Assembly: GCF_003918875.1 (NCBI RefSeq)
Contig: NW_025767046.1
Location: 3,410,001 to 3,474,000, forward strand
Origin: Haliotis rubra
Lineage: Eukaryota
Reading direction: 5' to 3'
Length of the DNA stretch: 64,000 bases
In this document: positions 27,720 to 59,298 of the stretch, one piece after another
Layout of the letters: each line of letters starts with the position of its first letter
Position numbering within the stretch: position 1 is the stretch's first letter
Made by a program: the position numbers and the translations under genes
The notes under the pieces: model-generated
What the model was told of the DNA's origin: nothing
The model's database searches: none
What the model saw: the letters and a program-made list of their open reading frames with translations, nothing else

Positions 27720-30700
27720 TCAGTATTTTCGTATTCTTCTTATTCTTCTGGATTCCTTCTTCCTGTTTCTCTCACACTTTCTCTCCTTCTCTATCTCCAC
27801 TGACCTCTCACTATCTCTCCTACTGTAACTGTCCTGGCCATCTGTCCTCTGTTTCTTTCTGGCTGGACTTCTACTCCGGCCACAATCACTATCCCTTTCA
27901 CTATCTCTCCTACAGCCAGCTACCCTCGAATCCATCTTCTGTTCCTTAGAAACAGGGCTACTTTGTGTAATCAGACAGCTCTCACTATCCCTCCTGCTGG
28001 AGCTTGCTTGAGAGTCTGTCTTCTGTTTATGTGTGACAGGGCTTTTATGAGTACTGCCACCACTATTATATTCCTTGTCATCTAAATGTCCATCTTGTCT
28101 CATCAGGTTGTCTCTCACCTTGGTGATGATTTGTCCAAGCAGGTTTTGACCCTGCCATGTTCGCTCGTCCCAAGCCCGGGGGTCATTCTTGTGTAAGGCA
28201 ATTCCCCAAGTGGCATCGTAGGGACTGGCCTCCACCATCAGTCGAGGTGCTGTGGCAAACAGCTTTTTCTTTAGGTGGGGATTTTGGGAAAACTGGAAAC
28301 ATAATAGAAATATGTTACTTATGCTTGCCTGAAGAGTTCCTTTGTTTTGTCAGCACATTCTATTCCTTGAAGACTTGGTTTATTATATTTTTTTATTTCA
28401 AAGGAAATTAAAACAATCCTGGCTTCAAGAAGTGAGTGAGTATCGTTTTAGCAATATTCCAGCAATATCACAGCGGTGGACACCAGAAATGGCCTCCACA
28501 CATTGTACCATGGAGGGAATCAAACTCGGGTCTTTGGCTTGTCAAGCAAACACTTAAACCACTAGGCTACCCCACCTCCCCCTGGTTTCTAGACAAATAT
28601 ATGTTATATTCTATTTATCTTCTCTGAAACATTATCTGCTACCATGTGCTCAGTAGACTAAACATGGGTCATTTAGCCATGATAGTCAGTTTTATTCAAT
28701 TCATTCCTAAACACTGTGTTACATATCTTGTCAGTTTGTAAGTGTGTTAGTGTATATCCTACAACATCCTGTCCACATCACAGTTGCCTGTAGTAATCTA
28801 GTGTGCACTTCATTTGTGAGTGAGTGAGTGAGTGAGTGAGTATAGTTTTACGCTACTTTTAGCAATATTCCAGCTAGTGATGTTCCGATGATCGAAAATC
28901 GATCGAAAGAAGGATTAAAAGTGATTATCGATTGTAAAAAATACATTTTCTATTAATCAGAATTTTGTTGCTTTTGTATAACACCCTTGAATGAAGTAAA
29001 CTAACCATCAAATCTGAAAAATATTCACGAACAAACATGCGCTCAACAGCGTAAAGCTATGCACATTGTAAAATTTTAACCACTTTTACTGTTTACAATT
29101 CCAGTGTCTTTCTTGTGTGCATTTCATTGCATGACAGCATTAGTTAGAAAAAAACTGGGGAAAAACCCTTAAAATTGGTGATTACATTAAAAATGTATAT
29201 ATTTCGATTACAATCGATAATCGTTCACCACAATCCTCCAATAATCGATAGTGGATTTGGTTTCCGATTCCCAACGCTAATTCCAGCAATATCATGTTGG
29301 GGACACCTGAAATAGGATTCACACACTGTACCCATGTGGGAAATCGAACCCGGGTATTCAGCATGACGAGGGAATGCTTTAACCACTTGGCTACCCCACC
29401 TCCCCTTTGCTAGTTGTCAACCTACAATATATTATGTCGATGCAGTATTGTTATACATTTATGAATACTGTGATTGAATAATTAATTGCCCTGTAAGAGG
29501 CGACTAACAGGATCAAGTGGTCCGGCTTGCTGGCTTGGTTGACACATGTCATCGGTTCCCAATTGCACAGAACGATGCTCATGCTGTTGATCACTGGCTG
29601 TCTGGTCCAGACTCGGTTATTTACAGACGGCCGCCATATAGCTGGAATATTGCTAATTGTAAACCAAAAGCCACTGTGTTCTTTAATCTGATTGGTTGAA
29701 AAACATGATCAAATGGTATTAGATTCCCGGAAATTCGCTGCGTATTAATACATACAAACATCGCTCACACCATTGTATTGTTACGTCGTCAGCTGTGATG
29801 ACGTCATAAAATCATATTGTGACGTAAAGTCCAAATGACGTCACAAATGAGCAGTTCCAGATGCTACCATGGGAGACAGCCGAAATGGCCGTCTGATGAC
29901 ATTTCACTGCTGTACCCGTACTCGATGTCAATGAATGCAGACACAAAAACGTGTGTGGACCTTCTGGTTTACTTTTGTGTTTACAATGTCGATAAACATC
30001 ATGTGTTGGCTGACGCCGTCTGTTCCAAATGAATTCCCGTGCTTCAAATACTCAATAACACCCGGAAATTGGCCAACACATGATGTTTATCTCCTAAGTG
30101 CGACGTAAAACTAAACTCACTCACTCACTCACACATTAATTGCCACTATAATTTTATATTACAAGATCATCATAGTTAAAATGAACAAAAGGCCATCTGA
30201 TGTATCAGCCTAGGAACTTTTTCATGTATTCACACAAAGAATAACTAATCTTGTTACTAAGAGTAAATACATATATCAATAACTGAAGTTTCCAATCAAT
30301 AACATTCCTAATGCTAAGCTGATCATGAGTTAGTCAGTGGGTATGTTTTGCAAAACTTCTCACAATATTCAATACAATATCACAGGAGAGGGCACCAGCT
30401 TCACGCATTGCACCAATATGGGGAATCAAACATGGGCCTTCAGTGTGACGATTAAACACTTGAACCACTAGGCTACCCTTCCGCCTCAAGTGTATTTTGC
30501 TGCATCTACAGACTGACCTTTGCCATGTTGCCCTTCTCCACGACCTCCTTGCTGTGCTGCATCCATGTGTCAAAGTTGAAGTTCTGGATCTGCTTGCCCA
30601 GACGCTTCTGTTCCTTGGGATCCCGGGAATTCAGTATCTTCTCCTCAATATCCTTGTCTTCAAAAAGAGCTGGAAAATGGAAAGTATGACAACTGCATGT

Positions 30701-33167
30701 AGATTTCATAAGGCTCTGTAGCTTACTGGACCATTTTATTTGCAGTTTTACAGATTATGTTATCTGAAACTTAAACATGTTAAATCTAAAGGTCATGTGT
30801 GCATAAAACGCTTATGAGTGAGTGAGTGAGTTTAGTATTACAGCACTTGTAGCAATATTACAGCATTGCACACCAGACATGGGCTTCACACATTGTGCCC
30901 TTGTGGGGAATTGAACCCGGGTCTTCGGCATGACGAGTGAATGCCTTAACCACTCAGCTACCCAACTGCCCCTAAAAACACTTATGATACTCAATTAGCA
31001 GTTTTATGCATAATATATCAACAAGAGTCATCAGAAGATGACATATCCCCCCAGCCCCCACATATTTGAAAGAACAAATCATCTGACAGTTAGTTTAAAA
31101 GTCCAAATCGTTTCCATGGAAATCATGAGAAATATAAATGCCAAAAATCTGTAAATAGCAAAAGGCACCATTTCAAAATTTGCCTAATATATCTGCGAAG
31201 TTCTGTTGAAAGATACTGAACGCTTTTCGAGTTGTGCACTGGAAATGAAGCCCACCCCTCCCTTTTGGGTCTAAGTCCTAATCGTTTCCCTTGAAACCAG
31301 GTAAAATATACATGCCAAAAATCTGCCAAATAGCAAAAGGCACCACTTTGGCATCTGTCTCACACATCTGCCAAGTTTTGCTGAAAGATATTAAGAAGTT
31401 TTCCAGTTGTGCAAAAGGCACCACTTAAGGTTCTGTTTGATATATCTACCAAGTTTTGTTGAAAAATATTGAATGGTTTTTTAGTTGTGCTCTGGAAACA
31501 AAGCCCACCCCCCCTTTAAGACTAAGTCAAAAACTTTTCCATGGAAACCAAGCAAAATAAAAATGACAAAAATCTGTAAATAGCAAAAGGCACCACCTTA
31601 GGTTCTGTTTGATATTTCTAACAATTGTGAATTGGAGAGTAGTGGTTAGAGCGTCCGCCTGGAGAGCGGAAGGTCGCGGGTTCGATCCCCGACCGCGTCA
31701 TACCAAAAGACGTTAAAATATGGTACTTGTTGGTCCCTGCCTGGCGCTCGGCAGTAATGGGTACAACAAGGACTGGTCGGCTCGGAGTCAGTATAATGTG
31801 TCTGAGTGGGGTATTCATGCTTCACTGCGGCATGGTATCTCAGTGGGCTAGCACTATAAAACCAGCTTAAGTCTGGGTTAGTGCAAGCAGCCGCAATTGC
31901 ACATACACATACACACGCATGCACGTCGTCATATGAGCGAAATATTCTCAAGCACGACGTAAAACCCAATTTCACCTCACCTTCTACTAATTTTTGTTGA
32001 AAAATATTGAACGGTTTTGGAGTTATGCTCTGGAAACAAAATGATTACGGACGGACGGATGGACAGACGAGGCGATGACTATATCCCCCCACATTACATG
32101 CCGGGTGGATAAAAAGCAATTGAAAACTCAGCCTGACCCAAGTAGGTATTTTCAGATAGCAGCTAAACAATTTTTAAATACGCGACTCAGTAAGACTCTC
32201 AGTAGTAGGACTGGGGCATGTCTCTACATCTCTACGTCATGTTTACAAGCCTTAAGTTTACTATAGATGTGGGTTTTCAAGCTTTCAGAGAAATAAAATA
32301 AATCAGCAATTAACGATATTGAGTGATACAGAACAGAAATTATAGTTTTAATACATAACACACATTCTACAATTTTTATCAATTTCATTACTCTTTCATC
32401 CATTCTCAAAGTGTAGGATGCAATAATTTGTGCCAGGTAAAATCCAGGCAGAAAATTACAGAAATTTTGCCTCTGCTGATACACTAAATATTTCATCTTA
32501 ACAAAAACACTTGCTTCACAGATATAACAAAATATGGATTGCAGATTCATTGTGCATTTTATCAGTTTGAAATGGTGAAATTTGAAAAAGCGTTTAAACA
32601 AAATTTATGTCATCATATTCTGTGTTTACACAGCAATAAAATTGAAATGGCCTTTCATTATTTTAATTCTGTGTATAACAAACTTGTTTTCTGAATGTTA
32701 GAAGAAATTAAATTAAATGAGAACGGCAGATTCATAGTGCAGAGCAATTTTTTTTCAGTTGGAAATGGTGAACAATTTACCAGAATTCAATTACATGTAC
32801 TTCATTTAGGTAAGGCTTTTACCAAAAACAATATTATCAGAAGCGGTCGTAAAATGCAAGCACCGGTCGCAAATGTTTGTCAACATCAACCTGTCAACTC
32901 ACCTGCCTTCCTGTACATGTAATACTGCTCTGCACAGTTGAATTCTTTGCCGTCAACTGTGAACTTGACCGGGTGATGTTGACTGAAAGGCGACTGCCAG
33001 CCAAAGAACAGTTCATATTTCTGTGACGGTCTTCCAGGGAACCTATCACCGCGGTGAAAGTTGTGCCTGTAGGGTGATCCTGCTTGAAAGTAACTTTCAC
33101 TTCTGCGTCGTTTGGATGGATCAACCTCGACATATTCACCGTCCCACTTCCGTTTACGACTTGACAT
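27720..33167 (-). CDS. NADAR/YbiA-family N-glycosidase paralog 1 (3 exons, ~329 aa as assembled; disrupted coding-like tail follows)
   Basis: Exons 33167-32903 (265 nt, donor GTGAGT), 30669-30518 (152 nt, acceptor tttccAG, donor GTCAGT) and 28292-27720 splice in frame. Motifs: FFGWQSPFSQHH, FNCAEQYYMYRKA, PKEQKRLGKQIQNF, KFSQNPHL, EASPYDATWGI, WQGQNLLGQII. Confidence 0.9.
28875..29279. mobile_element. hAT-type MITE with 8-bp TSD nested in a family A SINE
   Basis: TSD ATTCCAGC at 28867-28874 and 29280-29287; TAG...CTA termini. Confidence 0.75.
31020..32115 (+). mobile_element. Helentron/HINE (pearl-like) non-autonomous element with internal tandem repeats
   Basis: 5' acaagag; internal repeats containing aaatagcaaaaggcaccac; (GACG)n microsatellite; 3' C-rich/G-rich hairpin followed by an A run. 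Confidence 0.55.
31630..31985 (+). mobile_element. tRNA-derived SINE family C (Meta-domain-like), nested; fragments at 14650-14735(-), 52790-52860(+), 53390-53833(+)
   Basis: A/B boxes (AGTGGTTAGAGC, GGTTCGATCCC), central GTCATACCAAAAGACGTTAAAATATGGTACTTGTTGGTCCCTGCCTGGCGCTCGGCA block, (ACCTC)n tail. Confidence 0.75.
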
Positions 33168-35099
33168 TAGTTTTGATTGCTGTTCTAATTTCGGGCAGTT
33201 ATTTTTCAGTTCGCTTGTTACACCGTAAGAGTCTACATCATGAGTATCACTGACAATGCACGTGCAGAATCTAGAACCCAGAATCCACAGAGCCTAGCGC
33301 CATGTCCTGTTGGGGATGGGAGGTAACTCGGTAGGGATGTTTCCGCGAATTTGTGACGATTGCGAATAATTTTTCCGAGAATAGACCGGGAAGAATAGTT
33401 TCGATTAGGGAGATATAGACAAGGTTGTGTTAACATTAACCCGACAAAACCCAATTTACTTATCTGAAATAGATATTGAGACCCTAAACCTGATCTGACA
33501 TGAATCCAAAGGCAATGCAACCAATCGGTCACACAGACCCTGAAACAAATATACCCAATACAGCCCTTGCAAGTCTAGAATATGCGATATGTTTAGATTA
33601 CCATTTATCATCCAAAACTGTGTTCCACTGGAGATATTGCTAGTGTCCAAGGATGGATCAATGGAATCTCCTTGAGATATCGATTTGACAAGGCCCTGTA
33701 CAATGCCCTGACGTCATCAATTACATGAGATCACAATGCTTTGACAACATCAATTACATGACTCACAAAGCTATGACGTGAAAAACATGATGACATCATA
33801 ATGCTATGACGTCACAAACATGATGACGTCACAATGCTATGAAACCGCTTCACTGCAATTCTAATGGCAATACCATGTTCAAAGATGTACATTTTGCATT
33901 GAAAACTAATGACGATGGGTTTTGATGATAAATAGAATCTCACACTCGCTGATATAAGTAAAAATATCCTCGTCACGCCTAGCGATCGGATATTTGTCAC
34001 TTTATCAACTCGCGTTGACATAACTGATATCGGCAGACACTTGGGTGAGATTTCTTTTATCATCCAAAACTGTGCGTCACGATGTTGATTACATCACAAT
34101 GCTATGATGACATAAGCTGATGACGTCATAATGCTATGGCCTCACTGAGATCACTGCTCCAGAAGGCTAAATGGCAGTTTTGTGTTCAGATAAATTCATT
34201 CTTTTACTGAAAACTGTTGAAGAATGAGTTTGGATGATAATTTAAAAATCTCACCCTCGTGTCTTCTGATATCAAATATATCAACACTCGTTGATTAAAT
34301 TAAAAATATTTGTAACTTTAATCAACTCGTGTTAATATATTTGATATCAGAAGACACTTGGGTGAGATTTTCTATATGCACAGTTTCATGAAGAAATGTC
34401 TTTGTGCACCTTTTTATTATATTTCATGAAAATAATTACGACTGTATTTTTCCGGTAAAATGTATTCATTTAGGAGACTAAATGTTAGTCTACAATGCAA
34501 CGTGCAGTGCTAAGTACGGCTTACCCATATCATCAGAAACGAGGATCGTTTGAAGATTTGTCACGTAACCAACTTCTCAGTATTCTACTTCCGCTTTCTT
34601 AGTTAGGAACAATGTGTGAAGCAGAATTCTGATGCCCCAGTGATAGTGTTGGAATTTTGCTAAAAGTGCCAACAAAAAAAGCAAATATTCTCAATTACAC
34701 ACTTACATTCAGGAAATGTCTAACGAGACTCCTTCAATAGGATACATTGAGTGAGTGAGTTTAGTTTTACGCCGCACTCTGCAATATTCCAGCTATATGG
34801 CGGTAGTCTGTAAATAGTCGAGTCTGGACCAGACAATCCAGTGATCAACAGCATGAGCATCGATCGGCGCAACTGGGAACCGATGACATGTGTCAACCAA
34901 GTCAGCGAGCCTTACCACCCGATCCCGTTAGTCGCCTCTTACGACAAGCATGGGTTGTCTAACCCGGACCTTCACGGGTCAGTAGGATACAACTCGTCTT
35001 GATAATGTGATAATATGTAACAACCGAATCCATCAAGACAGCTAGAGTTCAACATAAATTACCCAACTATAACTGACATATCGCTGTAGGTACTAACAA

Positions 35100-35262
35100 C
35101 GTTATCAAGCAAGTGATACAAAGAGTTGATATCAGCCTACTCTGCTCAAATCACTAATTAGAAGTGCAATGTATATCAACTTTGTCAGTTGCATATACTC
35201 TCTATGCAGCTATATGTATATATTCTCCTTGTTTCAACTCTTTTTATCACTTGCTCGATAAC
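35100..35262. mobile_element. Small MITE with ~30-bp TIR
   Basis: cgttatcaagcaagtgatacaaagagttga / tcaactctttttatcacttgctcgataacg. Confidence 0.6.
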
Positions 35263-36053
35263 GGTGGCACTCATTGCAATAAAGAAGTTGACTATTCATA
35301 GAACTTGGTTTTCCTTCACCTATACAACTTCTAAAATGCCTCACAAAGATTTTTAAAGAGAAAGTTGGTGTTGAAGAACGCTATGTCACATTTATTAAAA
35401 CAACAGCGACAAAACAACAATTAAAACACTATGTAAACTTCATTTTCACATTTATGGAATATGGACAAATGTGTTTTGTACTTTGATAGATATCAGAAAA
35501 TGGACATGCAACTAATAATAAGAGAGGAGGCTTAATGCCCTGCGACCATCTTCATTTTAGTAAATATATCACATGGGTCAGCGAATTTGTTATTTGTTTA
35601 TTGTTTAACGCCACACCCAGCTGTTTTCCAGCTATATGACGGCGGTCTGTAAACAATTTAGTATGGACCATACAATCCAGTGATTGACATCATGATCATC
35701 GATCTGTTTTATTCCAAAACGTGCCTTACCTCATTCCAGTTAAACAGAGCTTAAAAAAAATATATTATTACTCTCAGGTAAGTCATTGTTATATTCTTTA
35801 TTGTAAACTTCACTTGTATGTTGGACATACTTCTTAAAGGATGTTTTAAAATCAGAGAGGTAAAATACCATAGCAGCAGCAACAACAAACGAACTCTACC
35901 GTAGCGCTAAAAAGATTAGAAGAAGAGGAGGGGAGGGTAGAATAAGAGTTATCGTTCTTGTTGGAAGTCGTTCTCGTGTTCAAACGCCACTATGGAATCC
36001 TTCGAGAGGGGCACTAGTCTCGGTTTGGCTTGTGTCGGAAGGACACGAGTTGG

Positions 36054-38761
36054 TCACGAATGATACACGGTATCTTTGTCGACTCGGACAACCATCCCTA
36101 TATATTTGTCTTCTTCATTAAGATATACTCGTCTGTCGGGCCTCTCTGTGTCATACCCACCCCTCTCACTATCCCCTCTGCTGTAATGTCCTCGATTATG
36201 TGTCTCTTGTTTTTCTGTGTCCATGTTTCTTGGTCGGTCCTGTCTGGGAAAAGGCTTGTTTTGGTTTTTTCGTTTCTTTTTCTTCTTTTTCTTCTTTTTC
36301 TTTTGCCTGCCTGTTCCCTCTTGTCCGCTGTTGTCACTGTCCCTTGTCTGTGACAACTGCCCAGGGTCATCTGGACACCCACTGCTGCTCGCCAATTGTC
36401 CGGAACCCCTTCCCTGACGTAAGTTCTGCCAGCTCACTCTTCTTCTGTCCATGTTGTCATTACTGGTACATTGGAACCCATCTGAACTATCCCCTGTAGA
36501 GCTGTAATCTGTCTTTTCCATACTTCCCCCTTCTTCGCCAACCAGAACTCCGTCTTGTCTCATCAGGTTGTCTCTCACCTTGGTGATGATTTGTCCAAGC
36601 AGGTTTTGACCCTGCCATGTCCGCTCGTCCCAAGCCCGGGGGTCATTCTTGTGTAAGGCAATTCCCCAAGTGGCATCGTAGGGACTGGCCTCCACCATCA
36701 GTCGAGGTGCTGTGGCAAACAGCTTTTCCTTCAGGTGGGGATTTTGGGAAAACTGGAAACATGATAGAAATATCTTACATGAACTGAAAAGTAAGAATAT
36801 CATATATATTGTTTGCTGTTTAGGGCCGCATTCGTCAGTTTCCCCGCTTTTACGACGGCGGTCAGTAAATATTCGAGTCTGAATTTAAACGAACGTCAAC
36901 ATTTGAAACTGCCCTACATTGCCACACAGTTAAAAGATATTGGTATGGAACACTACATCTCAAGAGTAGTCAGTTGGGCCGTGCCCATGCCCTCGAAATC
37001 CGAGTACAGGAACCAAGAACGGAAATTCAGTTACAGTGTTACAGTGACCGTGTTTGTTTGTTGTTTTACGCCGCACAGCAGTTCAGCAATTTACCAGCTA
37101 TATGACGGCGGTTAGCAGATAATCGAGTCTGGACCAGACAATCCAGTGACTGATATCATGGGTATCGATCTGCGCAACTGGGATACGATGGCCTGCAGCA
37201 ACCAGATCAGCGAGCCTGACCATCCGATCCTGTTACTCGCCTCTTATAGGCATGGGTTCCTGAAGTCCTGAAGTCCAGTAGTTTAGATTTCCACAGGTCT
37301 ATCACAGGTATCAGATTCCATATTGCAACAATTCTGGTTTGTAGGTGGACATGTAATTTTGTGATGATCTCCCAAATATTACCTGAATATGTAAGACATT
37401 GTCATCTACCGATGCTCTAGTGAGACAATTTAGAATCCAAACCTGGTGTAGTTTTTCCAAATATTGCTTGAATCAATCCATCAGATATTTATTCCTATGC
37501 TTTTGTCCTTCACGGTGGGAACAGAAGGTTGTTTTTTGTTGTAACCTTTCAATAATTCAGGAAGTTTTACGTCCTTGGGTCTTTTGATATTTTAAAACCA
37601 ATGACTAGATTTTTTTTGGAAAATAGAAATGCTGTGTCAGGTGACATTTTCACTGCATCTGTTCACGTGCAGTCAGCATTTCAGTCCTTAATGGATGGTA
37701 AGTGCATCATGAGTTAGTGAGTGAGTATGGTTTTACGTTGATTTTAGCAGTGTTCCGGCAATATCATGGCGGAGGACACCAGACATGGGCTTCACAAATT
37801 GTACCCATGTTGGGAATCGAACACGGGTCTTCAGCGTGACGAGCGGACACTTTAACCATGTGGCTACCCCACCGGCCCATGAGTTAGTGAGTGGGTATGG
37901 TTTTACAAGGCTGTTAGCAACATTCATTTCAATATCATTGAACCATGCACTTGGCTACCCTTCCACCTCAAGTGTATTTTGCCGCATCTACAGACTGACC
38001 TTTGCCATGTTGCCCTTCTCCACGACCTCCTTGCTGTGCTGCATCCACGTGTCAAAGTCGAAGTTCTGGATCTGCTTGCCCAGACGCTTCTGTTCCTTGG
38101 GATCCCAGGAATTCATTATCTTCTCCTGAATATTCTTGTCTTTAAAAAGAGCTGGAAAATGCAAATAAAAATGTCTTGAGTGAGTTAGGGATTTCACTGC
38201 TGGGGGCAGATTACAGACAATTTGGTTTGTTGAGGCAGAAAACGTTTCACGTGAATAAAAGAGGACGTTTTACAGATACGCACATCTAGTACATATCTGC
38301 CCATGTTGAAAATCTTCATGTGGTTTGAACCTTACAACAGACCACATAAATTAACATTATAACATGCAGTTAATTTATATTTCCCATAAAAGGAAAATAC
38401 TTTTAAGTGCCTGTATACAGTTTACGATTGGAAAATTCTACTTGAAACTGCATTTTAGTGTCGCAAATGTTTGTCAACATCAACCTGTCAACCCACCTGC
38501 CTTCCTGTACATGTAATACTGCTCTGCACAGTTGAATTCTTTGCCGTCAACTGTGAACTTGACTGGGTGGTGTTGACTGAAAGGTGACTGCCAGCCAAAG
38601 AACAGTTCATATTTCTGCGACGGTCTTCCAGGGAATCTATCACCGCGGTGAAAGTTGTGTCTGTTGGGTGATCCTGCTTGAAAGTAACTTTCACTTCTGC
38701 GTCGTTTGGATGGATCAACCTCGACATATTTACCGTCCCACTTCCGTTTGCGACTTGACAT
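36054..38761 (-). CDS. NADAR/YbiA-family N-glycosidase paralog 2 (3 exons, ~371 aa)
   Basis: Exons 38761-38497 (265 nt, donor GTGGGT), 38151-38000 (152 nt) and 36752-36054 splice in frame. Nearly identical to paralog 1 up to LMRQDG, then a different tail with a poly-Lys tract. Confidence 0.92.
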
Positions 38762-39543
38762 TACTTTTGATCGCTGTCAGTTCTCGCGAGAATAGACAAG
38801 GAGGAATACTCCACATGTAAATTCCTTTCAGAATTAGATTATCAGAGCCTGTATGTGAAATATCACATGAATGCTAGATGTTAGCGTTTACCTAATCGGT
38901 AGGAATAATGGTTACTAAACAATGCAGGGCTCGCTGACAACGACCCTTCCTAGTATTCTACTTTCGCTTTTGCTTTATCAGTTTCCAAGAAGTCTATAGC
39001 GTCTCCTTTGTTGCGCAACAATATACTCGGCCTATACATACTTGGGCGTACGTACCGTATATCCTCTAATATGATCATGTTCTCTGATAGCTTCTGTAAT
39101 TAAAACGCCTTACCAAATAATATATGATCGAGTTCGAATTAGATCCATATTTTCAACAATGGGCATGTAGGTGGCATTTGCAATATGAATAAAAATGTAT
39201 GTTTTCTCTCTTTGTTTTTTTATTTCAAGCTTCAGACTTACACTTAGTCCATTAAAGGGGCGGTGGGGTAGCCTAATGGTTAAAGCGTTCGCTCGTCACG
39301 CCGAATATCCGGGTTCGATTGCACATATGGGTACAAAGTGTGAAACCCATTCCTGGTGTTCCCCGTCGTGATATTGCTGGAATGTTGCTAAAAGCGGCGC
39401 AAAACTAATTCACCCCCTCACACTTTGTTTCGTATGATTTAGACTTTGGATATAAAAATGAGTATTGCTTCCACCTTGCTTGCTATTCGAGTGGTTTGAG
39501 AAATGCAAGTTCAGCTGGACATAATGAGAAAGTTATCGAAAAT

Positions 39544-47040: not shown

Positions 47041-48524
47041 TGCTAAAGATTGAAATCTTTCATATTTTACAAAATATAACAGTGTGGAAGTAATTTTGAG
47101 TGTGACTAGTGAGTGCGCTAGGACAATTCATATTTTTCATAAAATACCGCTAGATTTAGGTAATTTCATCTGCACTTGAGAAAAGTCTATTTGAAATGAC
47201 TTGATGTTACGTTACACAGAAAATCAGCAACAATGTGAAAGAAGTATACGTTTTATTTGCATTAAACATTTATTATGACACGTGACGACCAATCCCATGT
47301 GTGTCTGGCCCCTAATGATTTGTTTAACTTGCTACATTGATGAAATTCGGGATCGTTGCTACCAATTTTTAACTTCACAATCATCCTGAAAATTCTTTTA
47401 AAACTTCATTTGATCGTAGACCAACATAATCTTTTCGCATTGGCATCAGCCTCTGCCCCAGTACCATGGGAAGACATTGGGATTCTTGACATAATTACTA
47501 AATGTCATGTTGGTTTTATCCATCATTTGATACAGGTCAAGCAGTGAAATCACTGACCACATGAACAACAGGTGAGACCAGAAACCAATGTCCAGAAGAA
47601 GTTATTTTTTACAATATTTGACATTCATCATTTATATAATTTGCAGCATGAAATTACCACAAACTGAATACTGAGCCTCAGTGCTCTGAAGATCAACTGA
47701 AATATACTTCCCCTCAAACGTTTAGACTCACTGAAAACACTCACTATATGTATAAATATATGGTTACATCGAAGATGCAGATGAATTGCACGAGGATCAT
47801 GCATTACACTGCTGAAAAGCATGTGCAAATATCGTGCATGTGAACAGCTGCGTTTTGGTGTAAAGATTTGTTAAGAATTCGCCAATTTTCACTGATTTTT
47901 ATCATTTATTGAACTCATGACAATGATCTTTTCAACGTTACAAACTTGTTTTACAATACATCAGTTCATGTGTAAACAGTACCTTTAAACAGTATAGAAT
48001 GTTTTTGCAAAATTCAGTTTAGGACTGTTGCCTGACGTTAGTAAGTGGCTATATTTACACTAGTGAGTCTAAACTTTTGATGGTAAGTAAATAATGAAAT
48101 AATTCTTATCATGAATATAATGAGATTGAAATTCTGTGAGCAGTGTTCAAAGACACCATAGCTGGGAACTGTAATACCAGGTTTCAGTTTTCAGTTTAGT
48201 TGGTACCAGATTGGTACCCGGCCGTTGGAGAGATACCAGTTAACAATGGACAGTGTTCATGTGTCACCTCTCTTCCACTCATCTCACTGTCTTAGGGTTC
48301 ACTGAAAACAGTACCCACGACGAACATTATTCGAAGCTTCACGTACATAAGGTATCGTAAGTAGTGGTCGGAATTCCACGTAAACAAAGAATGTTAATTT
48401 ATATTTTCGAATCCAATCAAATTTGATTATAAAACCTGAAGGGTAAAAAAAATGTTTCAATACTTCGACCACGGAACCATTATTTTAGTAAAGAATATCT
48501 GTTCGTGAACTCCAGTGTGTATCA

Positions 48525-50430
48525 TTCCCTATTACATCTGGTTCACTCCCTCCACCATTCTATTACATCTGGTTCACTCCCTCCCCTATTCCATTACATC
48601 TGGTTCACCCCCTCCCATATTCCCCTATTCCATTACATCTGGTTCATTCCATCCCCTATTCTATTACATCTGGTTCACTCCCCCCCCTATTCTATTACAT
48701 CTGGTTCATTCCCTCCCCTATTCTATTACATCTGGTTCATTCCCTCCCCTATTCCATTACATCTGGTTCACTCCCTCCCTCATTCCATTACATCTGGTTC
48801 ACTTCCTCCCTATTCTATTACATCTGGTTCATTCCCTCCCCTATTCTATTACATCTGGTTCATTCCCTCCCTATTCCATTACATCTGGTTCACTCCCTCC
48901 CTCATTCCATTACATCTGGTTCACTCCCTCCCTCATTCTATTACATCTGGTTCACTCCCTTCCCTATTCTATTACATCTGGTTCACTCCCTCCCCTATCC
49001 CATTACATCTGGTTCACTCCCTACCCTATTACATCTGCTTCAGTCCCTACCCTATTCCATTACATCTGGTTCAGTCCCTACCCTATTCCATTACATCTGG
49101 TTCATTCCCTCTCCTATTCTATTACATCTGGTTCACTCCCTCCCCTATCCCATTACATCTGGTTCACTCCCTACCCTATTACATCTGCTTCAGTCCCTAC
49201 CCTATTCCATTACATCTGGTTCACTCCCTCCCCTATTCCATTACATCTGGTTCATTCCCTCTCCTATTCTATTACATCTGGTTCACTCCCTCCCCTATCC
49301 CATTACATCTGGTTCACTCCCTACCCTATTACATCTGCTTCAGTCCCTACCCTATTCCATTACATCTGGTTCACTCCCTCCCCAATTCCATTACATCTGG
49401 TTCATTCCCTCCCCTATTCCATTACATCTGGTTCACTCCCTCCCTCATTCCATTACATCTGGTTCACTCCCTCCCTCATTCTATTACATCTGGTTCACTC
49501 CCTCCCCAATTCTATTACATCTGGTTCACTCCCTCCCCTATCCCATTACATCTGGTTCACTCCCTACCCTATTACATCTGCTTCAGTCCCTACCCTATTC
49601 CATTACATCTGGTTCACTCCCTCCCTCATTCTATTACATCTGGTTCACTCCCTCCCCAATTCTATTACATCTGGTTCACTCCCTCCCCTATCCCATTACA
49701 TCTGGTTCACTCCCTACCCTATTACATCTGCTTCAGTCCCTACCCTATTCCATTACATCTGGTTCACTCCCTCCCCTATTCCATTACATCTGGTTCATTC
49801 CCTCTCCTATTCTATTACATCTGGTTCACTCCCTCCCTATTCTATTACATCTGGTTCATTCCCTCCCCTATTCCATTACATCTGGTTCACTCCCTCCCCT
49901 ATTCAATTACATCTGGTTCACTCCCTCCCTCATTCCATTACATCTGGTTCACTCCCTCCCTCATTCTATTACATCTGGTTCACTCCCTCCCCAATTCTAT
50001 TACATCTGGTTCATTCCCTCCCCTATTCCATTACATCTGGTTCACTCCCTCCCTCATTCCATTACATCTGGTTCACTCCCTCCCTCATTCTATTACATCT
50101 GGTTCACTCCCTCCCCAATTCTATTACATCTGGTTCACTCCCTCCCCTATCCCATTACATCTGGTTCACTCCCTACCCTATTACATCTGCTTCAGTCCCT
50201 ACCCTATTCCATTACATCTGGTTCAGTCCCTACCCTATTCCATTACATCTGGTTCACTCTCTCCCTATTCCATTACTTTCGTATATCCCCCCTCCCCCTA
50301 TTCCATTACATCCGGTTATTAAACCTCCACCGCCCCTCCCCTATTCCACTAAATCAGGTTCCTTTCCTCCCACTATTCTATTACATCCGGTTCCTTTCTA
50401 TTCTATTTCATCTGGTTCCTTTCCTCCTCC
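48525..50430. repeat. ~30-bp minisatellite (CCCTATTCCATTACATCTGGTTCACTCCCT)n with higher-order variants
   Basis: About 60 units directly visible; the degenerate terminal unit overlaps the NADAR4 stop codon. Confidence 0.95.
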
Positions 50431-53400
50431 ATCAGCGTGTCCCTCACATATGTCAATATGTATCCAAGCTGGTTCTTCCCTCTCCAGTTCTTCATGTCCC
50501 AGGCCAGAGGGTCCTCCCTGTCAAGCCCAATACCCCATACAAGGTCTGAGGGGCTCGCTTCAACCATCAGTTTAGGATGTGTTTTAAACAGCTTCTTTTT
50601 CAAATCCGGATTCTGGGAAAACTGAAAAATAAAATAAATGTGGATATATATTCTCAAGCTCATTTAATATATCAATTCGCCTGCATCCTCTTTCCTCTTT
50701 AGGCTCGTGGTTAAAGCGTTCGCTCGTCACGTCGCAGACCCGGGTTCAATTCTCCACTTAGGTACAATGTGTGAAGCCCATTTCTGTCCCCGGTCGTGAT
50801 ACTGCTGGAATATTGATAAAAGCGGCGGAAAACCATACAACTGTTTTTGTCATTGTTGGATCAGCATTCTAGAAGTTGCGGAATCAATAATGAAGCATAC
50901 AACTTTATAAATAACAATAATTTCCTGTTTATTGCAAGATTCTTCTGTAAAGCTTTTCATGTTGCCACTCTTAGTTTAATAACGGTGTAAGAATCTACCC
51001 CCGAAACGTCGGTCTGTGCAATAAACAAACGTTTATGTTATCCATAAAGTTCTACGCTTCATAGGGGCGGTAGGGTAGCCCAGTGGTTAAAGCGTTCGCT
51101 CGTCACGCCGAAGACCCGGGTTCGATTGCCCACATGGATACAATGTGTGAGGCCCAATTCCTGGTGTTCCCCGCCGTGATATTGCTGGAATATTGCTAAA
51201 AGCGGCGTAAAGCTAAACTCACTCACTCTATGTTTTATAATTGAACTGTTACAAGAATATATTAATTTCATATCCAACACACATATACCAGAACCATTAG
51301 AGTATTAACTCCCCGGATAATTTGTTCCGCCCAATGGCCCCACTTCGCGTGATATTTTTCTACCAATACGCTAAACGTCTAAGATCCCAACACCCTTAAA
51401 AACAACAGTTGTGTTCCAAGCGACGTTTAGCAACATTGGATCATTCACGCATTAATGAGGGGCGGTGGGGTAGCCTAGTGGCTAAAGCGGTCGCTCGTCA
51501 CGCCGAAGACCCGGTTTCGATTCCCCACATGGGTACAATGTGTGAAGTCCATTTCTGGTGTCCCCCGCCATGATATTACTGGAATATTGCTAAAAGCGGC
51601 GTAAAACTAAACTCACTCACCTTGGCCCGGTTTGCGCGTTCAACAACCCGCTGACAACACTCTTTCCACACTTTTATGTCAAAATTTTCGATCTTTCTTC
51701 CAAGTCGCTTGTGTTCTGCGGGATTATCCGTTGCCAATACTTTCGCCTCAATGTCTTTGTCATTGAATGTAACTGGAAATTTAGAGTGAAAATTGAAAAA
51801 GGAAAAAATAAAAATATATACATAGATATAATAATATTGATTATGTAAGATAAGCCTGTGGCATTTGTAGAGGGTATCTCAGATAAACACGAAAACATTT
51901 CATATGAAAACAGAAATGTTCTCTACTTTCGGTACTTTCATGCTAATCAAATAATGATGTTGGAAAATACATCCATGCTGAAGTACCACAATGATTGAAT
52001 GGGAGTTCCCTCTCACTAAATCACCCGGCCCCACTCACTCACTCAATCCACTTCCACCAGCAAGCTCGCGCTCTTACACGAACATGATCGGAAACATCCA
52101 CTTACCCATTCACTCACCCACTAAATCACAACCCACTCCACTCCACCACATCCCATCACACTCCGCTCCTCTCCTCTGTATGTATGTATGCATGCATGTG
52201 TGTATGTTTGAATGTATGTATGTATGTATGTATGTATGTTTGTATGTATGTTGTTTGTATGCATGCATGTGTGTATGTTTGTATGTATGTTTGTATGTAT
52301 GTATGTATGTATGTATGTATGTGTGTATGTTCGTATTTATGTATGTATGTATGTTTGTATTTATTTATGTTTGTATGTATGTATGCATGCATGTGTGTAT
52401 GTTTGTATGCATGTTTGTATGTATGTTCGTATTTATNNNNNNNNNNNNNNNNNNNNNNNNNNNNNNNNNNNNNNNNNNNNNNNNNNNNNNNNNNNNNNNN
52501 NNNNNNNNNNNNNNNNNNNNNNNNNNNNNNNNNNNNNNNNNNNNNNNNNNNNNNNNNNNNNNNNNNNNNNNNNNNNNNNNNNNNNNNNNNNNNNNNNNNN
52601 NNNNNNNNNNNNNNNNNNNNNNNNNNNNNNNNNNNNNNNNNNNNNNNNNNNNNNNNNNNNNNNNNNNNNNNNNNNNNNNNNNNNNNNNNNNNNNNNNNNN
52701 NNNNNNNNNNNNNNNNNNNNNNNNNTATGCATGCATGTGTGTATGTTTGCATGCTTGTATGTATGAATTCCACTCCGCTCCACTCCACTCCAGCGCTGAC
52801 TCAGTGATTAGAGCGTCCGCCCGGAGAGCGGAAGGTCGCGGGTTCGATCCCCGGCTCGTACTCACTGAGATATATATCTTATTCAACTTAAAGTGCCAAA
52901 AATCGCTACAATTATCTCGAAATGTCAAACCTGAACAAGCATGAATGACCACTTGACACATTATATCCGTGTAAGGGGAATCGAAGGCGAGACAACAGAA
53001 GTATGTAACTATTTATGACACGCTGAGGCTCATCCCTCGATACGTAAAAGAAGTGTTCTAGGAAGTGTTATGGTTGTATTTTATGCAGACAGGCAATGTC
53101 TGATCAAATAATGATGTTGGAAAATACATCCATGCTGAAGTACCACAATGATTGATGGGAGTTCCCTCTTACTAAAATCACCAGGCCCCACTCACTTACT
53201 CAATCCACTTCCACCAGCAAGCTCGCGCTCTTACACGAACATGATCGGAAACATCCACTTACTCATTCACACACCCACTACATCACAACCCACTCCGCTC
53301 AACCACATCCCATCACTCCGCTCCGCTCCGCACCACTCCACTCCGCTCCTCTCCACCACATCCCGCTCCACGTCTTACCTACCTTACGATCTGGTTCCCA

Positions 53401-56400
53401 GTACGTACCAATCACCCGAACAATGACATGACCGTTCATTGTAAAGCCGGTCCAGTGATGTGGAAAGTCCCTGCCTGGCGCTCGGCATTAATGGGTACAA
53501 TGACTGGTCTGCGCGCGCGCGTGTAATGTGTTTGCTCGGAGTATCAGTATAATGTGTTATGTTTGCTAGGGGGCGTATAACCGGTTTCATGCAGTTCAGA
53601 CATCACTGCGGCATTCAGAAAACTTCGTAACGCTCGGAAATCTGTTTCAGTGCCAAATATTATTTTACATTTATACTCATAAACCCAGTTAATCGAGCAT
53701 AGTGATTTTGTTCCGTTTTGCATTATAAATAGTAACTCATTAAGTAGTCTTTTGGTTAAAATACTACTTGCAATATTTTGCAATACATACGCATGCACGT
53801 CGTCATATGAGCGAAATATTCTCAAGCACGACGNNNNNNNNNNNNNNNNNNNNNNNNNNNNNNNNNNNNNNNNNNNNNNNNNNNNNNNNNNNNNNNNNNN
53901 NNNNNNNNNNNNNNNNNNNNNNNNNNNNNNNNNNNNNNNNNNNNNNNNNNNNNNNNNNNNNNNNNNNNNNNNNNNTTCTGATACATCATGTACTGTTCAC
54001 CACAGTTGAATGTCACACCATCAATCTTGAAATAGGCTTCGTGATGGTGACTGAATGGAGACTTGAAACCGTAGAATAAAAACAATTCGTCTTTTCCGGA
54101 TGATCCTATATATCGTTTGTCTCTATACGTGGGGTTAAACTGGGCGCCGTTTGTTGACGCGTTGCCGCATGTTTCTGTAGGTGTAATCTCCCTTGTCAAC
54201 CTTGGACCCATTGGTTCATTTTCTCTGTTTCCCAGCTGACGTCTTGAATCGCTGTCTCGTCTTCCCATTGGTTCATTTTCCCGTTTCTTATTATCCTGAT
54301 CCTGTTTTTCGTTCAACCACTTTCGCTTAGGGCGTACATCGCCATTCTTCGCTTCCTCTGCTCTGACGCCCCCTTCCGTCTGTCTCTCTGCCACCACTTC
54401 TCCCTCTTCCGCTATACGAGCCATCTTCTTTTTCTTCTTCTTCTTTTTCTTCTTGTTCTCGGAGTCCGCTGTTGCTTCTGCCTCTTTCTCAATTGCCACG
54501 TGTACCTTCGCTTTCGCTTGATGTTTCCGCGGCTGTGCCATCAGTTTATCCCGGACACGAGTCAAGGCATACCCCAAAAGATTTCTTCCTTTCCATGTAC
54601 TCTTGTCCCAAGCTCTGACATCGTCGCTCGCTAGTCCAATACCCCACTTCTTATTACCCGGGGTGGCCTCAACCAAAAGTTGAGGGTGTGTGGCAAACAG
54701 GGATTCATGAAGCTTGGGATTCTGATCGAACTGTAAGAAAAACAACAACTAAAACACAAACCATTTTTAGAATAACCTTAAGTCAAGATGGTCGTGTCAG
54801 CATTAAATATTTCAGAACCTATGACGAAAACGAAATGATGTTTATTTATTAATCTTCAATAAATAAACATCACTTTCCAGATTTGGGGCGTTATTTGATA
54901 TTTGATGACGGACGTTTTTGATGGAGTTTTGGAGTCTGTCCACTCATTCTGCAGGATGTCAGATATGTGGTTTTTTTCAGTATTATAAACTCTCAAAATA
55001 AAATAACTGTCTTGTTCGTGAACAAACAATATATATCATGTACATGTCCTATCATTAAGCCATAATTTGTAAAGAAACCCTTAAAGCCCATACGGTGCCA
55101 ACGCTTTGCTCAGCATCTGTGGTAAGGAATATATATACCTATTCTCATGAATATGCTGTGATTATTGAAAACAAATTTAAGACTCTCCGCTGTTTCCCTA
55201 CGTTTCCTATCTTCCTCCTGCCACGAATGTTCTCTCCGACGTGAAATGATAAAAACCTATTTATCTCAATTTTCCCCGCCTCTGTAGACTTTGATGTATG
55301 TCATGATGTGATATAAAATACTCTATTCCTCCGTACGCATATAAAACCAGGACAGCTTGAATCTCTCTTCATCTATACTTGTATTAAATATTCCAGAAGC
55401 ATAGCGAACCCATCGTAACAGGCCATAGACTATACTCGGGATTAAAGTGGCCTAGGCAAGAATATACCCTGGGTATATTATGGCCTAGGCCAATTTATAC
55501 TCCGGGGTATAAATCGGCCTATACCAATTCATACCTCACAGGACAGATTGTACCCCCAGTATAGCCCAGCTGATATATGCCTGGGTTAAGTTGCCTAGGC
55601 TAGATTACACCCGGGTATATTATGGTCTAGACCAATTCATACCTCACAGGACAGATTGTACCCCCAGTATAGCCCAGCTGAGATATGCCTGGGTTAAGTT
55701 GCCTAGGCTAGATTACACCCGGGTATATTATGGCCTAGACCAAGTTATACCTCACAGGACAGATTGTACGCCTGGGTTAAGTTGCCTAGGCTAGATTACA
55801 CCCGGGTATATTATGGCCTAGACCAAGTTATACTCCAGGTTTAAATTGGCCTATCCAATTCATACCCCAACTCCCACCAGGTCAGCAGATTATACCCCCA
55901 AGACATCAGAGGTGTTTGATTATAAGACTGACTTTTATTACTTCAACCAGGAAAACCACAATCAGTAAAAACAAAAGATCAAAATCACTTTTACACCTGT
56001 CAGTATTGTTCACACATTAAAATAAACTATATTCCCCAAACAACGAAACACAATTGTGAAAAAACCCGCTCAATTAACCTTTCTGTTCATAAAGTGATAG
56101 CATGTATAATGTGCTGAAACTGAATAATGTCCTCACTGCTGTATGTGTAAATGTACCAAGTTAAACACTGATAACATCAAAATGATCATGGTTGTTGATA
56201 TACTGTGTAAATACAGTCAAAGCCTTGTTACAGAAGAGGGGTATATTCTGGCCTGGAGGGGCATAGTCTAGCCAAGGATGTTTTACACACCGGGTATAGT
56301 GTGGCCTATAGGACAGTTTATTCCCCGGGGTATACTCTAACTATACCCGGATTTAATGCGGGCAGGGGCTAATCTGGCCTGTTACACCGGATCTCTTGGT

Positions 56401-58461
56401 GGTTGAGCAGGAGGTGAGAAACACATGAAAAATACGGATGATAATAATAATAATAATAATGTATTTATAAAGCGCCTTATATCCACCATAGAGATGCTCA
56501 GTGGCATGTCGAAGATTGTGCATCATTTTGTTTGGTTTGTAAATAATCGAGTCTGGGCCAGACAATCTCGTCACACCACAAGCAATCTACGCAATTTTGA
56601 CATGCAGCAATTAAGTCGGCGAGCTTGACCACTCCAGTTTTTCGCCTATTACGACCATCCTGGGTTGCTGATGACCAATTCTAACCCGGATCTTCACGTG
56701 TATGTGAGTGAGTGGGTTAGTTTCGTTTTACGCCGCACTCAGCAATATTCCAGCTATATGGAGGCTGTCTGTAAATAATCGAGTCTGGACCAGACAATCC
56801 AGTGATCAACAGCATGACCTTCGATCAACGCAATTGGGAACCGATGACATCGGTCAACCACGTCAGCGAGCCTGACCACCCGATCCAGTTAGTCGCCTCT
56901 TACGACAAGCATGGGTTACTGAAGACCAATTCTAACCCGGACCTTCACGTGTATGTAGTGCATCACCCTACCTTGGCTTCGATGGCGCGTTCAAGAACTG
57001 TTTCCATGCTGTTCTGCCAAGCCTCCTGGTTGAAATTTTGAATACCTTTCCCACTGTCTTTCAGTTTCTCGTGGTCACTGACGGACAGAATCTTTTTAGC
57101 ACTTGCGTCGTCATTGGATAGAACTGAAATTGGGAAAATACGGTGTTTGTTGTTTTAAATAACGAGGCAATATTCAGCTCTGGGACGAGTCCGTGATTGA
57201 GTCGGATCTTTTGAAAGCATGAATCGTATATACAGAGGAACTGGAATTTTGAAAATGTGCTGTTTGTTTGTTGCATGACATAACCTTCAGCAATATTCCA
57301 CCTTTATTATGTAAATTATAGTCCGTAAATAATCGTGTCTCTTCAGCACATGCTTCAGATGTAACTGAAAATCTGAAAACCAGACGTCTGTTGCTTAAGA
57401 TCACACTAAGCAATATTGCAGCTTTATGACAACAGTCTGAGACTTGGCATGAGAATCCAGTGACTGACATCATGAACATCGAACTATGCAACCGGGGTAC
57501 GATGATATGTATCAACCAAGCGAGTCGAGCTGAGCACCCGATCCTGTTAGTCGCCTCTTACGACAAGCTTGGTGTTTCTGTAATCTGCCTCACAGTCCGT
57601 GAACCACATTATTTTACTAAAGCCCCAAATGAAGCAAGTCTAGATTTCCTCATGTTCTGATTTTCCATTCAAACTGGGATTCGTTTTCAATTCAAACTGG
57701 TTTATTTGTTACTATCAAAATTATATATATATATTCAGACTCAAAGCGTTAGTCTAGTGTTGCTGAAGACGGTTTCTAAGATTGCAATATGCCAACCGAA
57801 TCTAATACCCCGATCTATAACGATATTCATAATTATTGAAGGGAGATCTTATATTTTTATTGATTGGAAGATGAGGCTTAGTGACTTAATATGTATAAAG
57901 AGACAACTCTGTTTATGCATAAATCATATTGCACTCTATATCTCGTTATTCTACAAATACTAAGCAATAGACCTTGTGCTGAAACTGCTACTACTACCAC
58001 GACGATTACATCCAATACTACTACATATTTTAATCTAGTTAAACCCCAAACGCGACTACTACTACTACATATTTTCATCTAGCTGACCCCAAACCCCTTA
58101 CTACTACTACTACTACTACGTATTTTAATCTAGCTGACCCCAAACCCCTTACTACTACTACTACTACTACGTATTTTAATCTAGCTGACCCCAAACCCCT
58201 TACTACTTCTACTACTACTACTACTATTGCGTATTTTCATCTAGCTGACCCCAAACCCCTTACTACTACTACGTATTTTTATCTAGCTGACCCCAAACCC
58301 CTTACTACTACTACTACTACTACGTATTTTAATCTAGCTGACCCCAAACCCCTTACTACTACTACTACTACAACGTATTTTAATCTAGCTGACCCCAAAC
58401 CCCTTACTACTACTACTACTACTACTACTACGTATTTTAATCTAGCTGACCCCAAACCCCT

Positions 58462-58500
<39 letters not shown>

Positions 58501-58688
58501 GTATTTTAATCTAGCTGACCCCAAACCCCTTACTACTACAACTACGTATTTTAATCTAGCTGACCCCAAACCCCCTATTACTACTACCACTACGTATTTT
58601 CATCTCGCTGACCCCAAACCCCCTATTACTACTGCTACTACTACTACTACTACGTATTTTCATCTACCTGACCTCAAACCCCCTATAG

Positions 58689-58737
<49 letters not shown>

Positions 58738-59298
58738 CACTACCACTACATATTGTAATCTAGTTAACCCCCAAACCCCTACCTAATACACACTCACACC
58801 TTGGCACTGATGCATATCAATTATAGCCAGGGTAGGCTGTGACATGTATCTGTACAGTTACAGAAGCCGTTCAAGGTACACGCCACATGATGTGACACGT
58901 TAGCAATATAAATAGACGACTTGACACGACGAGCAATGCACACCGCAAACAATACAGTTTTTGTTTCGCGTTCAGTTAAGGCTTTCGATTTCAAAACTAG
59001 TAATGACATGAATCTACACTTGCATATTTTACAAACCAGGTCGTGAATTATATCTTTATGTCATAGCACACACGCAGTGTTATTGTACGTGTGTCTCCCT
59101 GGCGGTTGTTCTGTCGCTTCCAGCAAAGTATAACTTTGTGTATACTGATCACATCGTTAACTCACCAGCCTGTTGGTAGGTAATGTAGTGTTCGGCGGAG
59201 ATGAACAGGTTGCCATCTATTTCGAAATCCGCCTTATATTGAAGGCTAAATGTTGAATCGTTGCCCAAGAAGAAGTGAAAATCGTGTTGATCCTCCAT
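50403..59298 (-). CDS. Tandem two-domain NADAR-NADAR protein, paralog 4 (5 exons, ~471 aa)
   Basis: Exons: 59298-59166 (133 nt, MEDQHDFHFFLGNDSTFSLQY...SAEHYITYQQA; too short for the ORF track); 57123-56972 (152 nt); 54730 to ~53971 (end of domain 1, Lys-rich linker, start of domain 2; donor lost in the N gap); 51772-51621 (152 nt); 50621-50403. All visible junctions are GT-AG and in frame. Confidence 0.85.
51459..51620 (+). mobile_element. SINE family A copy abutting the NADAR4 exon 4 splice donor
   Basis: Full-length copy whose ACTCACTCAC tail ends at 51620, directly next to the exon end at 51621. Confidence 0.9.
52178..52765. repeat. (TATG)n microsatellite spanning an assembly gap
   Basis: Direct inspection; N run 52437-52725. 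Confidence 0.95.
55410..56390. mobile_element. Non-autonomous TIR element with internal ~115-bp tandem repeats
   Basis: Termini gtaacaggcc (55415) / ggcctgttac (56376); repeated gcctgggttaagttgcctaggctagattacacccgggtatattatgg units at 55520-55830. Confidence 0.6.
58060..58790. repeat. Compound minisatellite: constant ~30-bp block plus variable (CTA)n
   Basis: cgtattttaatctagctgaccccaaacccctta recurs about 13 times, separated by CTA tracts of varying length. Confidence 0.92.

Follow-up and report, generated by a model that had tools for sequence, protein, structure and literature searches.

Four tandem NADAR genes of the blacklip abalone as candidate nucleobase de-ADP-ribosylases, one of them carrying a probable pseudo-domain

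What purpose might be served by a run of four neighbouring NADAR genes in an abalone? The question is raised by a 64-kb stretch of contig QXJH01000037.1 of Haliotis rubra, the blacklip abalone (assembly GCA_003918875.1), which is referred to here as the window. Open reading frame (ORF) listing and a Pfam scan place four genes, A, B, C, and D, on its minus strand between 27.7 and 59.3 kb, and together these encode five NADAR domains (PF08719). The physiological role of animal NADARs is explicitly an open question in the ADP-ribosylation field. We propose, at about even odds (a probability near 0.5), that the best explanation of the locus is a tandem NADAR cluster with nuclear nucleobase de-ADP-ribosylases that serve in protection, with the first domain of D as a non-catalytic module. 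The genes, and the two assembly gaps that fall within D, are the following.

Gene A, minus strand, exons 33167-32903, 30669-30518 (152 nucleotides), and 28292-27720: 329 residues, one NADAR domain.
Gene B, minus strand, exons 38761-38497, 38151-38000 (152 nucleotides), and 36752-36054: 371 residues.
Gene C, minus strand, exons 45766-45481, 44529-44378 (152 nucleotides), and 43850-43536: 250 residues.
Gene D, minus strand, exons 59298-59166, 57123-56972 (152 nucleotides), 54730-53976 plus gap-hidden bases, 51772-51621 (152 nucleotides), and 50621-50403: domains D1 and D2.
Assembly gap, 53834-53975: hides the third base of the codon equivalent to Lys50 in D2 (AA?), the end of D's third exon, and its splice donor.
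Assembly gap, 52437-52725: within a (TGTA)n microsatellite of the D intron between 54730-53976 and 51772-51621; no coding effect.

A preliminary description of this DNA, made from its letters, had reported four same-strand genes whose five NADAR domains share one exon layout, and the rebuilt exon models and the Pfam scan agree with it. In each domain, the middle exon is 152 nucleotides long, with a phase-1 intron before it and a phase-0 intron after it; the phase-1 split follows a Y-x-K-A motif, and the phase-0 split follows an A-K that precedes F-S/D-Q-N (five of five domains). The intact GT-AG splicing that had also been described is present at every visible intron of A to D, with open reading frames, but the sole unseen splice site, the donor after the first exon of D's second domain, is hidden by gap 53834-53975. 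A tblastn search with the assembled products over the whole 64 kb returned no NADAR piece beyond A to D. RefSeq already models A (P0002), B (P0001), and D (P0207, P0059, and P0206). Gene A is LOC124285835, whose isoform X3 of 329 residues is identical to P0002; gene B is named “N-glycosidase YbiA-like”, with P0001 as its 242-residue isoform X4; and gene D is LOC124285849, with isoforms of 471, 452, and 445 residues.

That these are NADAR domains is clear from both profile and fold. The profile hidden Markov model search against the NADAR family that had been suggested as a check gave PF08719 matches on all four genes: against a curated gathering score of 35.1 bits, single exons score 45-76 bits, the full D product 278 bits in two stretches, and the A/B orthologue of Haliotis rufescens 161 bits. 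The domain of A occupies residues ~46-206 and matches the ADP-ribose-bound NADAR of Phytophthora nicotianae (PDB 8BAU) with an E value of 9e-20 and ~29% identity, and E. coli YbiA with an E value of 1e-9. Its AlphaFold2 (AF2) model has a predicted local distance difference test (pLDDT) score of 94.6. With this model, Foldseek returned 8BAU at a template modelling (TM) score of 0.80 and YbiA (2B3W) at 0.76, and no different fold at E<1; the Swiss-Prot NADAR structures give TM values of 0.67-0.85.

Do the domains retain an active site? Key residues are numbered here as in the Phytophthora NADAR (Schuller et al. 2023, PMC11543638), the chain index in the 8BAU alignment being two ahead of that paper, and ten positions were tabulated: Glu43, Lys50, Lys75, Gly78, Arg/Lys79, aromatic 84, Trp89, Glu125, Asp130, and Trp133. 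A, B, and C hold the full set, with Phe at position 84, and they keep Glu43, Lys50, Lys75, Gly78, Trp89, Glu125, Asp130, and Trp133 of the Phytophthora protein, which is the best solved relative. D2 keeps all ten except Lys50, whose codon reads AA? at the edge of the gap. D1, by contrast, has Gln50 and Asn130. The canonical motifs formerly attributed to all five domains are thus found in A, B, and C, and in D2 where it can be read, but not in D1, with its Lys50-to-Gln and Asp130-to-Asn changes. Lys50 is invariant among 36 aligned homologues, and its equivalent in the E. coli C7 NADAR, Lys95, is essential for guanine-ADP-ribose hydrolysis (PMC11543638). Because D1 has lost a lysine that is invariant in its relatives and essential in the equivalent position, it is predicted to be non-catalytic, and it is probably not an enzyme.

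This loss is shared between distant abalones. The degenerate D1 is followed by a charged linker of ~140 residues with a Lys run and then by D2, and both Gln50 and Asn130 recur in the Haliotis cracherodii orthologue (P0230), to which D1 is 71%, the linker 62%, and D2 80% identical. Between the window and the allele seen in transcripts, the ratio of nonsynonymous to synonymous substitution rates (dN/dS) is ~0.5 in D1, ~0.9 in the linker, and ~0.2 over what can be read of D2, values that are computed from few changes, with four differences in the D1 middle exon standing outside the tally. D1 also has the longest branch in the domain tree. From these comparisons, D1 appears to be under relaxed constraint and yet to have been kept, as would be expected of a pseudo-enzyme domain that binds or regulates. 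Most likely, it would be a non-catalytic module that binds ADP-ribose or nucleic acid, or that regulates D2. At codon 16 of D (window position 59253), the public-run transcript and a DNA allele have Pro where the window has Thr, and the Pro restores in D1 the S-P-F-S motif of the family.

The RNA evidence for D comes from Logan contigs of three RNA runs of one study, X1, X2, and X4. Contigs from all three join 54730 to 56972 and 57123 to 59166, that is, exactly at the predicted exon borders. The junction check proposed in the preliminary description, which here covered two junctions of D, therefore gave exact agreement. The introns of D are uncovered by RNA contigs except for copies of a short interspersed element (SINE), at which the depth reaches tens of thousands. 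One contig of 1453 nucleotides (run X1) reaches from D1 across the linker into the beginning of D2 and extends 359 nucleotides past 53976. For the frame that enters gap 53834-53975 to fit the phase-1 acceptor at 51772, 3n+2 exonic bases have to lie hidden. RefSeq isoform X1 of D (P0207, 471 residues) consists of 346 window-encoded residues, exactly three more, and then 122 window-encoded residues, and three residues are also what the paralogues have at the same place. Given this interval and the contig that runs on past 53976, the two sides of the gap are compatible and in frame. The RNA contigs differ from the window by ~3%; since most of the listed differences are also present in a DNA run of the same coded organism wherever it has coverage, these are allelic or population differences rather than RNA editing. 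For gene C, the RNA runs contain 16-17% of the sampled words of its stretch, which, as word shares only, is weak evidence of expression.

How did the cluster arise? In the tree of NADAR domains, the abalone domains form one clade that excludes those of scallop, oyster, clam, and amphioxus (Shimodaira-Hasegawa-like approximate likelihood ratio test, SH-aLRT, 95), and this clade lies within a wider animal group among bacterial and eukaryotic NADARs. Its members are the five window domains, the two domains of H. rubra LOC124291567, the three and the eight domains of two H. rufescens genes, and P0033 (JGI). Because all the abalone domains fall together, the cluster is, on this tree, a lineage-specific expansion within the abalone lineage. 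The expansion is large. LOC124291567, on another contig (P0063), is predicted to encode 948 residues with two NADAR domains and a BESS motif; H. rufescens LOC124138828 (P0213), 1051 residues with three NADAR domains; and H. rufescens LOC124129589 (P0211), up to 4851 residues with eight NADAR domains, six of which are at ~642-residue spacing and all have Met at Lys50. The first domains of these predicted multi-NADAR proteins (P0211/P0213, P0063) have Leu43 and Tyr125. Domains of D1 type group with the first, and those of D2 type with the second, domains of the other multi-NADAR genes; therefore, the two-domain fusion is older than the duplications of the multi-NADAR genes.

The exon layout is older still. 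In the scallop Mizuhopecten yessoensis, NEDP02005059.1 (L002 1606-14754) carries two head-to-head NADAR genes of 249 and 557 residues, ~3 kb apart, and both have the intron positions, phases, and 152-nucleotide exon of the abalone genes. It follows that the layout predates the expansion and was ancestral to gastropods and bivalves. Accordingly, the argument that the shared 152-nucleotide layout proves a recent local duplication has to be rejected, since the scallop NADAR genes have it too; the duplication for which the preliminary description had taken it as an indication is nevertheless borne out by the Haliotis-only clade. Bacterial contamination or recent horizontal transfer is likewise rejected in view of spliceosomal introns at positions shared with scallop, SINEs within the introns, and placement in an animal clade. 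Oysters (P0041 and P0032; Crassostrea gigas and related transcripts) have NADAR fused to a Nek4-like protein kinase, and these fusions make up a bivalve subclade with good support.

The NADAR domains of A and B are 94.5% identical with a dN/dS of ~0.18, and both genes are under purifying selection. Identity of 95-97% is, however, confined to three blocks, 33183-32866, 30683-30466, and 28318-28089 in A against 38777-38460, 38165-37948, and 36778-36549 in B, which are the NADAR-coding exons with 14-52 nucleotides of flank; the introns (2.2 kb in A versus 0.35 kb in B, and 2.2 kb versus 1.2 kb), the upstream DNA, and the C-terminal tails are unrelated. This pattern suggests either gene conversion limited to the exons or a complete replacement of the introns.

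Outside the domains, the products are rich in charge. The N-termini of A and B have a bipartite basic motif, R-K-R-K, twelve residues, and K-R-R-R; C has K-R-K ... K-K-Q-R; and the D linker has a run of ten Lys and an R-P-K-R-K. No signal peptide was seen in the products of A to D, as judged by eye. The basic motifs may be taken as hints of nuclear localisation, which would fit a nucleic-acid substrate. The tail of A is rich in Arg, Ser, Asp, and Glu, that of B is unrelated to it and has a Lys run, and that of C is acidic. The end of A deserves comment. Downstream of its stop codon are charged low-complexity ORFs on the minus strand in two frames, 27347-27652 and 25833-27437, called as a separate gene of 493 residues. 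The A/B orthologue of H. rufescens (P0084, XP_046361661.2) is a single protein of 1053 residues, automatically named PPIG-like for its RS-rich (Arg/Ser-rich) tail, and its residues 473-1053 align to the charged ORFs, the alignment running on through 27580-25836. Because this orthologue continues through the downstream charged ORF, the stop of A at 27720 is doubtful; A probably does not end there, the charged ORFs (25833-27719) being its likely continuation. In H. rubra, joining A to the charged ORF needs two frame changes, near 27740 and near 27430; these may mean that A is truly truncated, that a small intron lies there, or that the assembly has an indel.

What, then, might these proteins do? 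In vitro, ADP-ribose is taken off guanine in DNA and RNA by NADARs from each of the four subfamilies (Schuller et al. 2023; Mikolcevic et al. 2026, PMC12945103), and some of them, the sponge enzyme included, act on cytosine as well (Mikolcevic et al. 2026, PMC12945103). We propose that A, B, C, and D2 would be intracellular and probably nuclear glycohydrolases that cleave ADP-ribose off the exocyclic amines of guanine, and perhaps of cytosine, in DNA or RNA, a step modelled on what the bacterial, oomycete, and sponge enzymes do in vitro. In this view, the abalone proteins would be guided to nucleic acids in the nucleus by their charged, RS-like tails and basic motifs, and the repair would target nucleic acids modified by ADP-ribosyltransferases of the pierisin/ScARP/CARP-1 type, whether microbial, dietary, or endogenous. 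Molluscs are among the NADAR-bearing animals (Cihlova et al. 2024), NADARs have already been put forward as putative erasers against pierisin and CARP-1, explicitly as an assumption (Schuller et al. 2023), and a metazoan defence role has been proposed along with immune data for a ladybird NADAR (Mikolcevic et al. 2026, PMC12945103). By analogy with these systems, an eraser and defence role in abalone is plausible. Of the interpretation first given to this locus, the intron-bearing NADAR paralogues produced by duplication in the abalone lineage stand, as do catalytic residues in four of the five domains where readable; D1, which is probably not catalytic, has to be taken out.

Several known NADAR proteins help to place these genes. 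The NADAR of the sponge Amphimedon queenslandica belongs with Streptomyces SCO5665 to the “NADAR family” proper (PMC12945103); these have a stand-alone domain with Glu at the catalytic position, as the abalone domains do, and the sponge protein is an animal enzyme that removes ADP-ribose from G and C in DNA and RNA in vitro, and a part in the defence of marine invertebrates has been suggested for it. The abalone genes differ in forming a tandem array and in having intron-split domains, motifs resembling nuclear localisation signals (NLS), long charged tails, and one two-domain fusion, a comparison made by features. The closest reviewed protein is C. elegans IRG-1 (O16327; TM 0.85, 37% identity), a single-domain animal NADAR, the likeness being one of fold and sequence. 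IRG-1 serves as a reporter of infection: P. aeruginosa that carries the ADP-ribosylating exotoxin A induces it more than 100-fold, and the response to exotoxin A and to translation block runs via ZIP-2. Our literature search found no paper that mentions irg-1 together with NADAR, and the search for NADAR with abalone returned only matches to author names. The DarG1/DarT1-associated NADAR antitoxins (BC4488 subfamily) share with the abalone proteins the fold, the predicted N2-guanine-ADP-ribose hydrolysis, and an equivalent of the antitoxin-essential Lys75, but they have an N-terminal beta-alpha extension and are encoded in an operon with the DarT1 toxin. They also have Asp for the catalytic Glu125, a DarTG1 signature (PMC11543638) that is absent from the abalone domains, all five of which have Glu at the equivalent of position 125. 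An adjacent cognate transferase, the other mark of DarTG1, is likewise absent within the window, although this is a weak test. E. coli YbiA and the plant PYRR NADAR have the same fold (TM ~0.67-0.76), and YbiA is the source of the RefSeq name of gene B; they differ in their riboflavin or LexA-operon context and in a much weaker sequence match (E 1e-9).

Several considerations weigh against the proposed role of nucleobase eraser. The eraser role of mollusc NADARs is one that we infer from relatives, and NADAR activity in vitro is not predictive of protection in vivo (Cihlova et al. 2024). The substrate of A and B could be a different one, as the alignment to 8BAU shows Lys in place of Arg79 and Phe in place of Tyr84, and neither Asp86 nor Arg93 is present. 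CARP-1 homologues are reported mainly from bivalves and not from gastropods. The ORF lists and called genes of the 64-kb window contain no recognisable ADP-ribosyltransferase, although one split into short exons might have escaped notice; besides the NADAR genes, only the charged ORF and an ankyrin/SOCS-box gene are called at the locus, in agreement with the preliminary description, which had seen no writer enzyme. Finally, the RS-like tails and the BESS motif of the paralogue fit roles in RNA or chromatin equally well.

The main rival is suggested by this last point. The proteins may be nuclear RNA-processing factors, that is, NADARs, catalytic or not, in ribonucleoprotein complexes that act on NAD- or ADP-ribose-derived RNA ends or intermediates, with RS-like tails that recruit them to the splicing or transcription machinery and with no part in toxin defence. 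The model for this role is C. elegans SNA-3, for which such a mode of action has been proposed, a nuclear multi-NADAR animal protein whose first domain is without the conserved residues while the others are required, mutations in them being inactivating; D has the same layout of a degenerate first and an intact later domain. A weak SR-25 match in the tail of A, the PPIG-like name that the H. rufescens orthologue owes to its tail, and the BESS motif of LOC124291567 point the same way. SNA-3, however, is reported to be nematode-specific, without homologues outside the phylum; it has 937 residues with three NADAR domains and works in SL1 trans-splicing complexes, with the SL1 snRNP and CBC-ARS2 as partners, and the abalone domains, compared with it by architecture, are not its orthologues. 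They group instead with NADARs of animals and bacteria that have one domain and a complete catalytic set, and low-complexity tails, which differ even between A and B, are weak evidence. We consider an SNA-3-type role unlikely. A more specific alternative makes the NADARs the self-protection partners of an endogenous CARP-1-type DNA/RNA ADP-ribosyltransferase that molluscs would use against viruses or parasites, the NADARs erasing off-target marks on the host, which would be a true writer/eraser system as first suggested for this locus. The eukaryotic branch of CARP-1 homologues is centred on Bivalvia with other animals represented, guanine-N2 DNA ADP-ribosylating activity is present in six clams, and NADAR genes are present in several copies or side by side in both the clam Mercenaria and scallop. 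Moreover, NADAR, YbiA-like, and Macro domains are found in an oyster nidovirus, which would be expected if hosts mark viral RNA. Yet this virus is evidence from a bivalve, the published link of NADARs to CARP-1 and pierisin marks is an explicit assumption, and there is no writer gene within the 64-kb window. Nor do we know of any CARP-1 homologue in Haliotis, and an endogenous writer appears distinctly doubtful.

The remaining readings would take the proteins away from nucleic acids, or from function altogether. As small-molecule damage-control N-glycosidases like YbiA and PYRR/RibX, they would act on reactive ribosyl-amine metabolites, such as dietary or microbiome riboflavin intermediates or ADP-ribose adducts. 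N-glycosidase activity was the first to be demonstrated for the family, the fold matches those of the YbiA and PYRR NADAR domains, and gene B bears the YbiA-like name in RefSeq. Animals, however, do not make riboflavin, and no fusion or linkage to a riboflavin gene was found within the window. The ADP-ribose-bound Phytophthora NADAR is a much closer match than YbiA, and NLS-like motifs with long charged tails would be odd in metabolite repair; we regard this function as very unlikely. That the genes are redundant or decaying duplicates without maintained function could be argued from the elevated dN/dS and long branch of D1, from the unconserved tails, and from the frame changes in the 3′ part of A relative to H. 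rufescens. Against this stand the open frames and intact splice sites, the transcription and correct splicing of D, the low A-B dN/dS, the catalytic residues of four domains (the Lys50 codon of D2 being gap-hidden), and the persistence of the D1 substitutions, at 71% identity, in H. cracherodii. Decay is therefore rejected as largely refuted and is highly improbable.

If the proposed base-linked ADP-ribose erasers are what A, B, C, and D2 are, they could help to show whether nucleic acids are ADP-ribosylated in animals, and they would matter for how molluscs defend themselves against toxins or viruses, a point of relevance to aquaculture losses. The oyster nidovirus domains hint, by analogy, at ADP-ribose conflicts in molluscs. 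It is tempting to go further and to picture, in abalones and perhaps in molluscs more widely, an expanded nuclear system that both reads and erases nucleobase ADP-ribose, in which the catalytic A, B, C, and D2 would erase and pseudo-NADARs would read, as the host side of an arms race with toxins or NADAR-carrying viruses and in parallel to the IRG-1 response. The candidate readers would be D1 and the domains without Glu43/Glu125 or without Lys50 in the three- and eight-NADAR proteins of H. rufescens. We hold this extended scheme to be unlikely. Whatever the function, abalones offer a rich natural panel, with near-identical catalytic paralogues that have different tails, a fusion of pseudo- and catalytic domains, and predicted giant multi-NADAR proteins in a sister species. 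Already known are the RefSeq genes (named “N-glycosidase YbiA-like” or “uncharacterized”), the presence of NADARs in molluscs, the idea of erasers against pierisin and CARP-1, and the metazoan defence role; new here are the tandem array, the expansion across Haliotis, the fusion of a conserved pseudo-NADAR to a NADAR, the recognition that the intron layout is ancestral, and the link to IRG-1. At present, the cluster is an annotated gene family expansion with a functional guess derived from the literature.

One further gene was called in the window, with no evident link to the NADAR genes.

Ankyrin-repeat/SOCS-box gene, 18097-19359, plus strand: intronless, 420 residues, ~6.5 kb beyond the charged ORF.

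A 31-bp minisatellite of ~58 copies (48531-50317) lies ~90 nucleotides downstream of the stop codon of D, and a 51-bp tandem array of ~14 copies (58055-58780) lies within its first intron. Copies of the SINE, which recurs across the window, are at 56510-57052 and 57415-57776, and the sequence right after the donor of the D exon 51772-51621 (51459-51625) resembles this same element.

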